Below are positions 16,430 through 17,746 of a stretch of 64,000 nucleotides of DNA, piece after piece; positions within the stretch are counted from its first letter, which is position 1, and the number at the start of each line of letters is the position of its first letter. The notes beneath the pieces are model-generated. The model saw nothing but the letters and a program-made list of their open reading frames with translations, was not told where the DNA came from and did no database searches. A program made the translations under genes and the position numbers. Source of the DNA: Histomonas meleagridis 2922-C6/04-290x (taxonomy: Eukaryota; Protista; Parabasalia); contig JAANOX010000035.1 of the NCBI GenBank assembly GCA_020184695.1, positions 124,001 to 188,000 of the forward strand, in the 5' to 3' direction.

Positions 16430-17746
16430 ATGTTCTTTGCATTAGTTGCAATCAGAAGCATCTTGCTTCCAAGACCAACACCAATTGGTCCTTTCTCACT
16501 TCCTACAAAATACGTCCTTAATGACGAATATGATTATGAAGAAAACAAGATCAAGATCAAGAAGATCATCAAAAAAATCAAGGATGTTGTTGACAAGACC
16601 AAAAAAGTTGTTGATGTAATTGACGAAGTTACAAACGATGACGAAAACAAGCTCAAAGATATCCTCAAGAAAGTTGTTGATATTGTTGACAAGGCTGACA
16701 AGATCGTTGATATCATCAGCGGTTCAAACGACGAAGACGAAAACAAATTCAAGGATATCTTCAAGAAGGTTGTTGATATTGTTGATAAGGCCGACAAGAT
16801 CGTTGATATCATCACAGGCTCAAACGACGATGACGAAAACAAGCTCAAGGACATCCTCAAGAAAGTTGTAGATATTGTTGACAAGGCTGACAAGATCGTT
16901 GACATCATCAGCGGTTCAAACGACGAAGACGAAAACAAATTCAAGGATATCTTCAAGAAGGTTGTTGACATTGTTGACAAGGCCGATCAAATCGTTGACA
17001 TCATCACAGGCTCTAACAATGATGGTGAAGAAAACAAATTCAAGGATATCTTCAAGAAGGTTGTTGACATTGTTGACAAGGCCGACAAAATTGTTGATAT
17101 CATCACAGGCTCAAACGATGATGACGAAAACAAACTCAAAGACATCCTCAAGAAGGTTGTAGATATTGTTGACAAGGCTGACAAAATTGTTGATGTCATC
17201 AGCGGTTCAAATGATGAAGACGAAAACAAGCTCAAGGACATCCTTAAGAAGGTTGTTGACATTGTTGACAAGGCCGACAAGATCGTTGACATCATCACAG
17301 GCTCAAACGACGATGACGAAAACAAGCTCAAGGACATCCTTAAGAAGGTTGTAGATATTGTTGACAAGGCCGACAAAATTGTTGATATCATCAGCGGTTC
17401 AAACGATGAAGACGAAAACAAGATCAAACTCGGAAAGATAATCGACAAAATCAAGGATGTTGTTGACAAGGCTGACCAAATCGTTGACATCATCACCAAT
17501 GATGAAGATGAAGAAGACTTAGAAGTTGAATACGTTCTTGAAGAAGCACCAGAACTCGGCGAAAACAAGTTCAGACTCAAGAAGATCTTCAAGAAGATTG
17601 GAAAGGTCGTCAAGGTTGTCACAAAGGTCGTTAAGATCGGCAAGAAAATCGTCTCCGTTTTCAATGGTGAAGAAAATAAGGACCCAATGTGCCGCAGACT
17701 CTGCACACTTTCAATGCCACCAAAGTGCTACAACGTTTGCGCATAA
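16430..17746 (+). CDS. Putative secreted polyprotein precursor of amphipathic peptides ending in a Bowman-Birk-like peptide
   Basis: Short hydrophobic N-terminus MFFALVAI. Eleven helical units each start with K after an acidic spacer ending EN. C-terminal KDPMCRRLCTLSMPPKCYNVCA. Codon usage is strongly AAG/GAC/ATC/CTC-biased. CDS is well supported; function is inferred. Confidence 0.85.
   Translation: MFFALVAIRSILLPRPTPIGPFSLPTKYVLNDEYDYEENKIKIKKIIKKIKDVVDKTKKVVDVIDEVTNDDENKLKDILKKVVDIVDKADKIVDIISGSNDEDENKFKDIFKKVVDIVDKADKIVDIITGSNDDDENKLKDILKKVVDIVDKADKIVDIISGSNDEDENKFKDIFKKVVDIVDKADQIVDIITGSNNDGEENKFKDIFKKVVDIVDKADKIVDIITGSNDDDENKLKDILKKVVDIVDKADKIVDVISGSNDEDENKLKDILKKVVDIVDKADKIVDIITGSNDDDENKLKDILKKVVDIVDKADKIVDIISGSNDEDENKIKLGKIIDKIKDVVDKADQIVDIITNDEDEEDLEVEYVLEEAPELGENKFRLKKIFKKIGKVVKVVTKVVKIGKKIVSVFNGEENKDPMCRRLCTLSMPPKCYNVCA
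16649..17419 (+). repeat. Coding tandem repeat: 8 copies of a 96-nt unit (one copy 99 nt)
   Basis: Unit K(L/F)KDI(L/F)KKVVDIVDKAD(K/Q)IVD(I/V)I(S/T)GSND(E/D)DEN. Copies differ mainly at synonymous sites. Confidence 0.97.

Follow-up and report, generated by a model that had tools for sequence, protein, structure and literature searches.

What is made from an intronless gene of Histomonas meleagridis, a gut parabasalid protist and poultry parasite, that codes for eleven amphipathic helices set between acidic spacers, one of them with a net charge of +12? The gene lies in a 64-kb stretch of contig JAANOX010000035.1, hereafter the window (the whole stretch of DNA analysed), which belongs to an assembly of 43,133,364 bp in 281 contigs that matches the attenuated strain (PMC8529796, Table 1). 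We think, with about even confidence, that the gene encodes a secretory or lysosomal polyprotein from which cleavage after Asn, probably the work of legumain, would free amphipathic, membrane-attacking peptides. The precursor nature of the protein is well supported by its architecture, conservation, family structure and transcription.

When the protein is split between Asn and Lys wherever the Asn follows Asp, Glu or Gly, 13 pieces are obtained: the leader with a Pro-rich propiece, unit 1, eight repeats, a variant unit with the long acidic propiece, the +12 helix and the tail. The features of the gene are the following.

16430-17746, forward strand: intronless coding sequence of 438 residues plus stop, the proposed prepro-polyprotein.
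16430-16462, forward strand: leader MFFALVAIRSI, a signal-peptide-like N-terminus by its likeness to other leaders of the same genome.
16463-16546, forward strand: Pro-rich propiece, ending in Asn31, and first acidic spacer DEYDYEEN, ending in Asn39.
16547-16648, forward strand: unit 1, 30 residues with net charge +5, plus spacer DDEN; conserved in most paralogues.
16649-17419, forward strand: eight tandem units of 32 or 33 residues (Tandem Repeats Finder: period 96 bp, 8.2 copies, 85% matches).
17420-17500, forward strand: variant unit of 27 residues, ending in Asn357.
17501-17566, forward strand: long acidic propiece, residues 358-379, ending before the +12 helix, with the motif Y-x-x-E-x-x-P-x-x-G-x-N.
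17567-17665, forward strand: +12 amphipathic 33-mer, residues 380-412, ending in Asn412, from the translation.
17666-17677, forward strand: short spacer GEEN, ending in Asn416, from the translation.
17678-17743, forward strand: Cys tail of 22 residues, CxxxC-x7-CxxxC, net charge +3 by hand count.

There are 11 helical units in the precursor, the +12 helix being one of them. Each of the eight repeats consists of a 27-residue amphipathic module (net +1) ending in Asn and an acidic spacer that also ends in Asn, and the hydrophobic moments of these repeats (0.46-0.60) are attained by fewer than 1% of shuffled sequences. An initial annotation of this DNA, made before the present analysis, was silent on these near-neutral (+1) units, which make up eight of the eleven. 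It had called unit 1 cationic, which holds for the sign of the charge; the value is only +5 over the 30-residue core because the C-terminal half is acidic and the N-terminal half basic. Tandem cassettes, acidic spacers and conserved boundaries, with a junction G-x-N that is invariant in the family alignment (A1), are the arrangement found in multi-peptide precursors.

The +12 helix was the subject of that annotation, and its description was borne out. Translation of 17567-17677 gives 11 Lys, 1 Arg and neither Asp nor Glu in 33 residues, followed by GEEN, and the spacer before the helix is indeed the longest acidic one of the protein, with 12 acidic and no basic residues by hand count. The amphipathic pattern was confirmed by an Eisenberg hydrophobic moment of 0.47 at 100 degrees, in comparison with 0.20 ± 0.10 for shuffles (about 1% of 5000 shuffles attain it), which rises to 0.64 at the best angle of 105 degrees, a heptad-like period. 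In a charge scan of the 14,859 33-residue segments from all open reading frames (ORFs) of at least 100 residues in the window, the 33-mer ties for the top net charge, and it is the sole segment of top charge that also has a high hydrophobic moment. Its composition is that of a linear cationic antimicrobial peptide (AMP), with net charge +12, mean Eisenberg hydrophobicity of about 0 and no Cys; 16 of the 33 residues are hydrophobic by hand count. It is rich in Val, Ile and Lys, with Lys along the whole length, Gly at positions 12 and 25, and no Pro. Both parts of the block are conserved in alignment A1: the Y, E, P, G and N of the propiece and the F..KK..KK..K pattern of the helix are invariant. 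AlphaFold2 (AF2) places a helix at residues 101-141 of the paralogue C106 with a predicted local distance difference test (pLDDT) score of about 50, and a strand (381-387) and a helix (393-411) in the window protein with pLDDT below 50.

The boundaries between the modules are marked by Asn in a way that suggests a processing signal. Twenty-five of the 26 Asn residues of the window protein lie at boundaries between spacers and units and none inside the 11 helical modules; for comparison, the product of the neighbouring RPN1 gene contains 4.8% Asn. Family-wide, 142 of 185 Asn residues are at boundaries and few inside helices. Moreover, the junction Asn is invariant in distant homologues from metagenomes, including those with K, R or W in the following position. 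Full-length legumain (Peptidase_C13) genes whose products have signal-like leaders number at least 10 in the genome, the exoproteome of H. meleagridis contains a legumain (PMC6391000), and the legumains of Trichomonas are reported to be lysosomal and secreted (PMC3581150, PMC8717582). Since Asn brackets every spacer, legumain genes are many, a legumain is found in the exoproteome and there are precedents in Trichomonas, cleavage after Asn by legumain would be the simplest reading, and we tentatively name legumain as the protease of the precursor. N-glycosylation was considered as another role for these residues and discarded, because the junction Asn residues precede D/E or K and not x-S/T.

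The modules have been kept under strong selection. For the eight internal repeats, the synonymous rate dS is 0.81, the nonsynonymous rate dN 0.039 and their ratio omega 0.05. Across 12 paralogues, omega is 0.09 for the +12 helix (dS about 1.5) and 0.13 for the acidic propiece (dS >1). Purifying selection on the units is thus strong (omega 0.05-0.13) with synonymous sites near saturation, and because this selection extends to the propiece, we take it to be a specific element and not filler. Besides, the charge of an acidic segment follows that of the basic segment behind it, with r = -0.73 over n = 68 segment pairs of the family, a descriptive correlation because the segments are not independent. 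The pairs amount to -14/+13 at the helix segment of the window protein and -5/+8 at unit 1, and the net charge is close to 0 in the short paralogues. Such balancing of peptide charge by propiece charge is what AMP precursors with anionic propieces present.

The gene is part of a family of about 15 paralogues in the genome, on different contigs. All of them open with M(F/L)FALLALRSI and then a Pro-rich stretch, and the cassettes behind it vary in number and kind, which fits a family of peptide cassettes. The block of propiece and cationic helix, common to 12 of the about 15 paralogues, is shared more widely than any other element; the 32-residue repeats occur only in C35 (the window gene), C17 and C144. 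The short paralogues have no repeats, yet they keep helix, propiece and tail. Two members deserve separate mention. In the paralogue C130:73702-74895 (398 residues), cassettes of the unit-1 type alternate with a second cationic type rich in KGK and Tyr, which is also found in the metagenome proteins P0003, P0009 and P0012. The C59 paralogue is without the Cys tail and has a hydrophobic end (VAGTVATVVAAI), so it might be a membrane-anchored variant.

Outside this family, sequence searches were almost empty. A word-based protein search matched only hypothetical proteins of H. meleagridis and two metagenome proteins. An exhaustive profile search of 1.84 billion protein representatives gave 12 proteins, of which Histomonas and metagenomes contributed six each, with no bacterial or other relatives; the metagenome homologues lie on short contigs of 36-42% GC. 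The exact 438-residue protein is absent from the public protein collection and no long member appeared in the exhaustive profile search; therefore, the long members are probably unannotated. In a scan of JGI metagenomes, 598 patterns matched the family profile and none was confirmed, and a feature search of the ESM Atlas gave no usable match. The whole protein had Pfam matches to 13 unrelated families (E<=0.1), none of them with a single stretch that passed, and these were treated as artefacts of repeats and composition. The only AMP families encountered, Clavanin (E = 0.88) and Pilosulin (E = 1.1), came up far below threshold for the paralogue P0001 and can be taken as hints only. A sequence search of the PDB with helix and tail returned only a chance match to an ABC transporter (E = 2.4). 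In a literature search, the antibacterial effectors described for parabasalids were saposin-like proteins and Lcn972-type peptides gained by lateral transfer; nothing on this family was found.

Transcription was studied with four small public runs that behave as complementary DNA (cDNA), assembled into contigs. Two further features are needed here.

16412-16429, forward strand: core promoter and initiator context, ..GGTTCTGTCATT ahead of the ATG, from the sequence.
16427-17779, forward strand: messenger RNA (mRNA) with a 5' untranslated region of 3 nt and a 3' untranslated region of 33 nt, from cDNA-like contigs, with poly(A) added after 17779.

The precursor gene is transcribed and polyadenylated, as shown by the poly(A) loose ends behind 17779 in two runs (X1, X2), by a 2013 cDNA contig that stops at 16427, where its loose end (CAGAGTACGGGGG) resembles an adapter, and by the upstream intergenic stretch 15993-16385, which is almost uncovered while cDNA-like contigs cover the ORF. 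The same runs have a poly(T) loose end ahead of the minus-strand gene of ribosomal protein S30. We infer that transcription starts at the A of TCA (TCATT initiator) at 16427, 3 nt 5' of the ATG. A contig joint that goes back from 17606 to 16541 was taken as an assembly artefact between similar stretches coding for KKI(F/I)KKI. A related context, TCAA..TG(C/A)CA(A/T)(A/T)ATG, precedes most paralogues and four of the six metagenome homologues. These tandem initiator-like TCA elements abutting the ATG suggest a shared core promoter and near-leaderless mRNAs. Comparison of the 40 nt 5' of each ATG also showed that most family members share a context like GTCAAnnTGCCAAAATG or GTCATTTTGTCATTATG at the start.

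The first question is whether the protein is cut at all. It might act intact: an amphipathic-repeat protein, secreted or vacuolar, could bind to lipids or membranes as do exchangeable apolipoproteins or LEA (late embryogenesis abundant) proteins. Its task might be to scavenge lipids or to coat membranes, and the cationic helix with the Cys tail would be an anchor or sorting element. The eight near-neutral 27-residue helices, with an alternating K/D polar face and a broad hydrophobic face, would suit such a function, every unit is under strong selection, and trichomonads depend on scavenged lipids. AF2 also predicts each unit as a separate helix; for the full-length window protein the mean pLDDT is 40 and the predicted template modelling score (pTM) 0.24, values by which a repeat fold is neither supported nor excluded. 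However, an intact protein leaves without obvious role the Asn residues at both ends of every spacer, which are invariant in distant homologues; the repeat-free short paralogues retain helix, propiece and tail; and charge matching module by module is typical of propieces. We consider an uncut protein unlikely.

The Asn-cut polyprotein would work as follows. After transcription from the initiator 3 nt 5' of the ATG and polyadenylation, the step that is directly observed, a short N-terminal signal peptide would take the product to the secretory or lysosomal route. In the precursor, the basic amphipathic segments would be neutralised by the acidic segment that precedes each of them. An Asn-specific endopeptidase, suggested by the Asn-delimited modules and the many legumain genes, would then cut after Asn on both sides of the spacers. 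This would release about 11 helical peptides, namely the +5 unit, the eight 27-mers that are nearly neutral, the variant unit and the +12 33-mer, as well as the 22-residue tail stapled by disulfides. The +12 helix, perhaps with others, might bind and permeabilise anionic membranes, judging by its physicochemical properties.

Which membranes would be attacked is the second question. We think that bacteria are the more likely target, both those ingested by this bacterivorous parasite and those living around it, with host cell membranes as the alternative. According to that alternative, the processed peptides would be a cytolytic virulence factor directed at the cells of the bird for invasion of caecum and liver, and not antibacterial. 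Helices with a Lys-only polar face and about 50% hydrophobic residues are often haemolytic, although a very high cationic charge usually means a preference for the anionic membranes of bacteria. H. meleagridis invades tissue, and other lytic molecules are found in its exoproteome (PMC6391000), but the parasite also takes up bacteria by phagocytosis and cannot do without them (PMC6391000, PMC8529796). The gene is, moreover, intact in the genome of the attenuated strain, so its presence alone confers no virulence. A host-directed function is in our opinion unlikely, to about the same degree as an uncut protein. The deletions between virulent and attenuated strains were also considered; they concern other genes, g6116vir and g7085vir.

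The third question is whether the protein enters the secretory pathway. Positions M1, F3, A7, L8 and I11 of the leader do not vary in alignment A1. The leaders of the legumains, cathepsins L and saposin-like proteins encoded in this genome are similarly short (10-13 residues) and hydrophobic, for example MLSLLLSAAFSA, MFFILVTNIFS and MFALLLISTLSS, and the leader of a hydrogenosomal-type malic enzyme, MSLVSATSSNSFARGF, is unlike that of the family. The family leader thus resembles, by sequence likeness, those of secretory or lysosomal enzymes and not a hydrogenosomal presequence. The saposin-like genes on contigs C136, C2 and C34 code for precursors of 412-626 residues with leaders of 11-12 residues like those of this family, and several SapB matches stand in one frame in those of C34 and C2.

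At the other end of the protein, two Cys columns of the tail are invariant across the family in alignment A1. The pattern CxxxC-x7-CxxxC is present in the window protein, C17, C106 and C142, and Cys spacing varies in other paralogues. AF2 models the tail as a beta-hairpin in C106 (pLDDT 73-87), in contrast to two short helices in the window protein (pLDDT about 50); for a short paralogue, the mean pLDDT is 50 and there is no confident compact fold. The start of the tail, CRRLC, presumably recurs as the first Cys loop of gomesin, a spider peptide. Prenylation of the tail at a CaaX box was rejected, as the last Cys lies at -1, -2, -3, -4 or -5 depending on the member and a secretory-type leader is present.

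A disordered charge-block protein of the cytosol or of an organelle (nucleic-acid-binding, cytoskeletal or hydrogenosomal), whose leader would be no signal peptide, would agree with the low AF2 confidence throughout and with a short leader bearing Arg9, given that hydrogenosomal presequences of trichomonads carry Arg near the cleavage site. We find it quite improbable, since the leader matches those of secretory and lysosomal enzymes of this organism rather than the presequence of malic enzyme, the conserved even number of Cys in the tail suggests disulfides formed in the secretory pathway, and the Asn-delimited cassette structure would have no explanation. Equally improbable is that the near-neutral repeats are the main product, as signalling or matrix peptides or as partner or antidote of the cationic ones, with the +12 helix for granule sorting or aggregation: they are eight of the 11 helical units, have an omega of 0.05 and could pair with basic helices through their acidic C-terminal halves, but only three paralogues (C35, C17, C144) carry them, whereas the +12-type helix with its propiece is shared by 12 of about 15.

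Several points nonetheless weigh against the Asn-cut polyprotein with membrane-attacking products. Arg9 of the leader lies near any cleavage site, and the +12 helix is rich in Val and Ile and has AF2 confidence below 55. As eight of the 11 units are near-neutral (+1) and not typical cationic AMPs, the bulk product may do something else. Contig depth over the precursor ORF is far above that over RPN1 and the convergent ORF downstream, but such depths cannot rank genes; therefore, we claim the presence of the transcript and not its level. The accessions of three annotated short paralogues are absent from the supplements of a surfaceome and an immunoprecipitation study, which weighs little because a surfaceome and a set of immunoprecipitated antigens are uninformative for a secreted or processed Lys-rich product. 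This gene and the other long paralogues could not be detected by proteomics searched against the public protein set, because they appear to be missing from it. Secretion, cleavage and antimicrobial or lytic activity are all predictions from sequence.

The surroundings of the gene include the following features on the opposite strand.

13237-15750, reverse strand: RPN1, neighbour gene.
17815-18792, reverse strand: convergent ORF of 325 residues, without Pfam match, covered by cDNA-like contigs.
19189-19377, reverse strand: ribosomal protein S30, neighbour gene.

The end of the convergent ORF is 36 nt past the poly(A) site of the precursor gene. Further on, an ORF of 131 residues (19473-19868, forward strand) has a Lys/Arg-rich C-terminus at about 19752 that reaches +12 yet is weakly amphipathic, and its sole Pfam match is a sub-threshold Rpo13. 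The charge scan also brought up a histone H3-like N-terminus at about 61173 on the forward strand.

How does the family compare with known peptide systems? The initial annotation had spoken of a protist AMP of the cecropin or magainin class. The protist and the precursor architecture stand; membership of those families has to be given up, because neither the 33-mer alone nor helix plus tail has a Pfam-A match (hmmscan, E<=10) or a PDB chain, and the element is not a cecropin. In particular, Cecropin (PF00272) is absent for the 33-mer and for helix plus tail (E<=10), among the matches of the 108-residue C-terminal part, and among those of the whole protein at E<=0.1. The likeness to cecropins and magainins consists of high positive charge, lack of Cys, amphipathic periodicity, a length of about 30 residues and an acidic propiece, whereas cecropins have a Gly-Pro hinge and a hydrophobic C-terminal helix, both lacking in the 33-mer.

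The antimicrobial effectors known from protists are either pore formers of the saposin-like type or enzymes and peptides taken over from bacteria. The former (amoebapores, naegleriapores, TvSaplips) have in common with the present family a likely bacteria-killing or lytic role, similar short leaders and multi-domain precursors. They are, however, of another fold class, with a six-Cys pattern in contrast to 4 Cys in the 22-residue tail, and neither SapB_1 nor SapB_2 was found by Pfam in the window protein or its parts. The saposin-like family is expanded in H. meleagridis (PMC8529796). Lactococcin-972-like AMPs of Trichomonas and other metamonads have been laterally acquired (bioRxiv 10.1101/2025.04.21.649813). 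They are likewise candidate antibacterial effectors of a parabasalid with a signal peptide, but they differ in their bacterial origin, in the beta-rich Lcn972 domain and in having one domain per protein.

Tentatively, we propose that Histomonas and its relatives known only from metagenomes may make a cocktail of linear membrane-active peptides, of three types per precursor, matured by legumain at Asn-bracketed acidic spacers. If this is true, it would be, to our knowledge, the first case of a protist with AMPs that are linear cationic helices, and linear cationic peptides born within the lineage from cassette precursors would constitute a new class of effector. It would be relevant to the ways in which a gut parasite that depends on bacteria kills, digests or shapes these partners, and possibly to tissue damage.

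The closest architectural parallels are the multi-peptide AMP precursors with anionic spacers, such as honeybee apidaecin, Xenopus magainin/PGLa, the Impatiens Ib-AMP polyprotein and the naegleriapore precursors of Naegleria. These share a signal-type leader, tandem cassettes in variable copy number, acidic spacers, conserved boundary residues and anionic propieces that balance the peptides. Their boundaries are dibasic or dipeptidyl, whereas those of the Histomonas precursor are single Asn residues, and no sequence relationship was found. Unlike them, the Histomonas precursor mixes three peptide types (near-neutral helices, the +12 helix and a Cys hairpin), and it comes from a parabasalid. 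With regard to the boundaries, the parallel is with plant peptides matured by asparaginyl endopeptidase (AEP), namely cyclotide precursors, sunflower PawS1/SFTI-1 and the alpha-hairpinin peptides buried in vicilins. In these systems, Asn at P1 also delimits the modules, of which there can be several per precursor, and the Cys pattern of plant alpha-hairpinins is the same CxxxC...CxxxC as in the Histomonas tail. In contrast to them, the Histomonas precursor, whose cleavage is a prediction, has no cyclisation signature or homology and its main modules are linear helices free of Cys. The Asn-bracketed spacers offer a testable processing rule that would tie legumains to peptide maturation outside plants, and the system, if it operates as proposed, would be convergent both with the charge-masked propieces of animal AMP precursors and with the AEP-matured peptides of plants.

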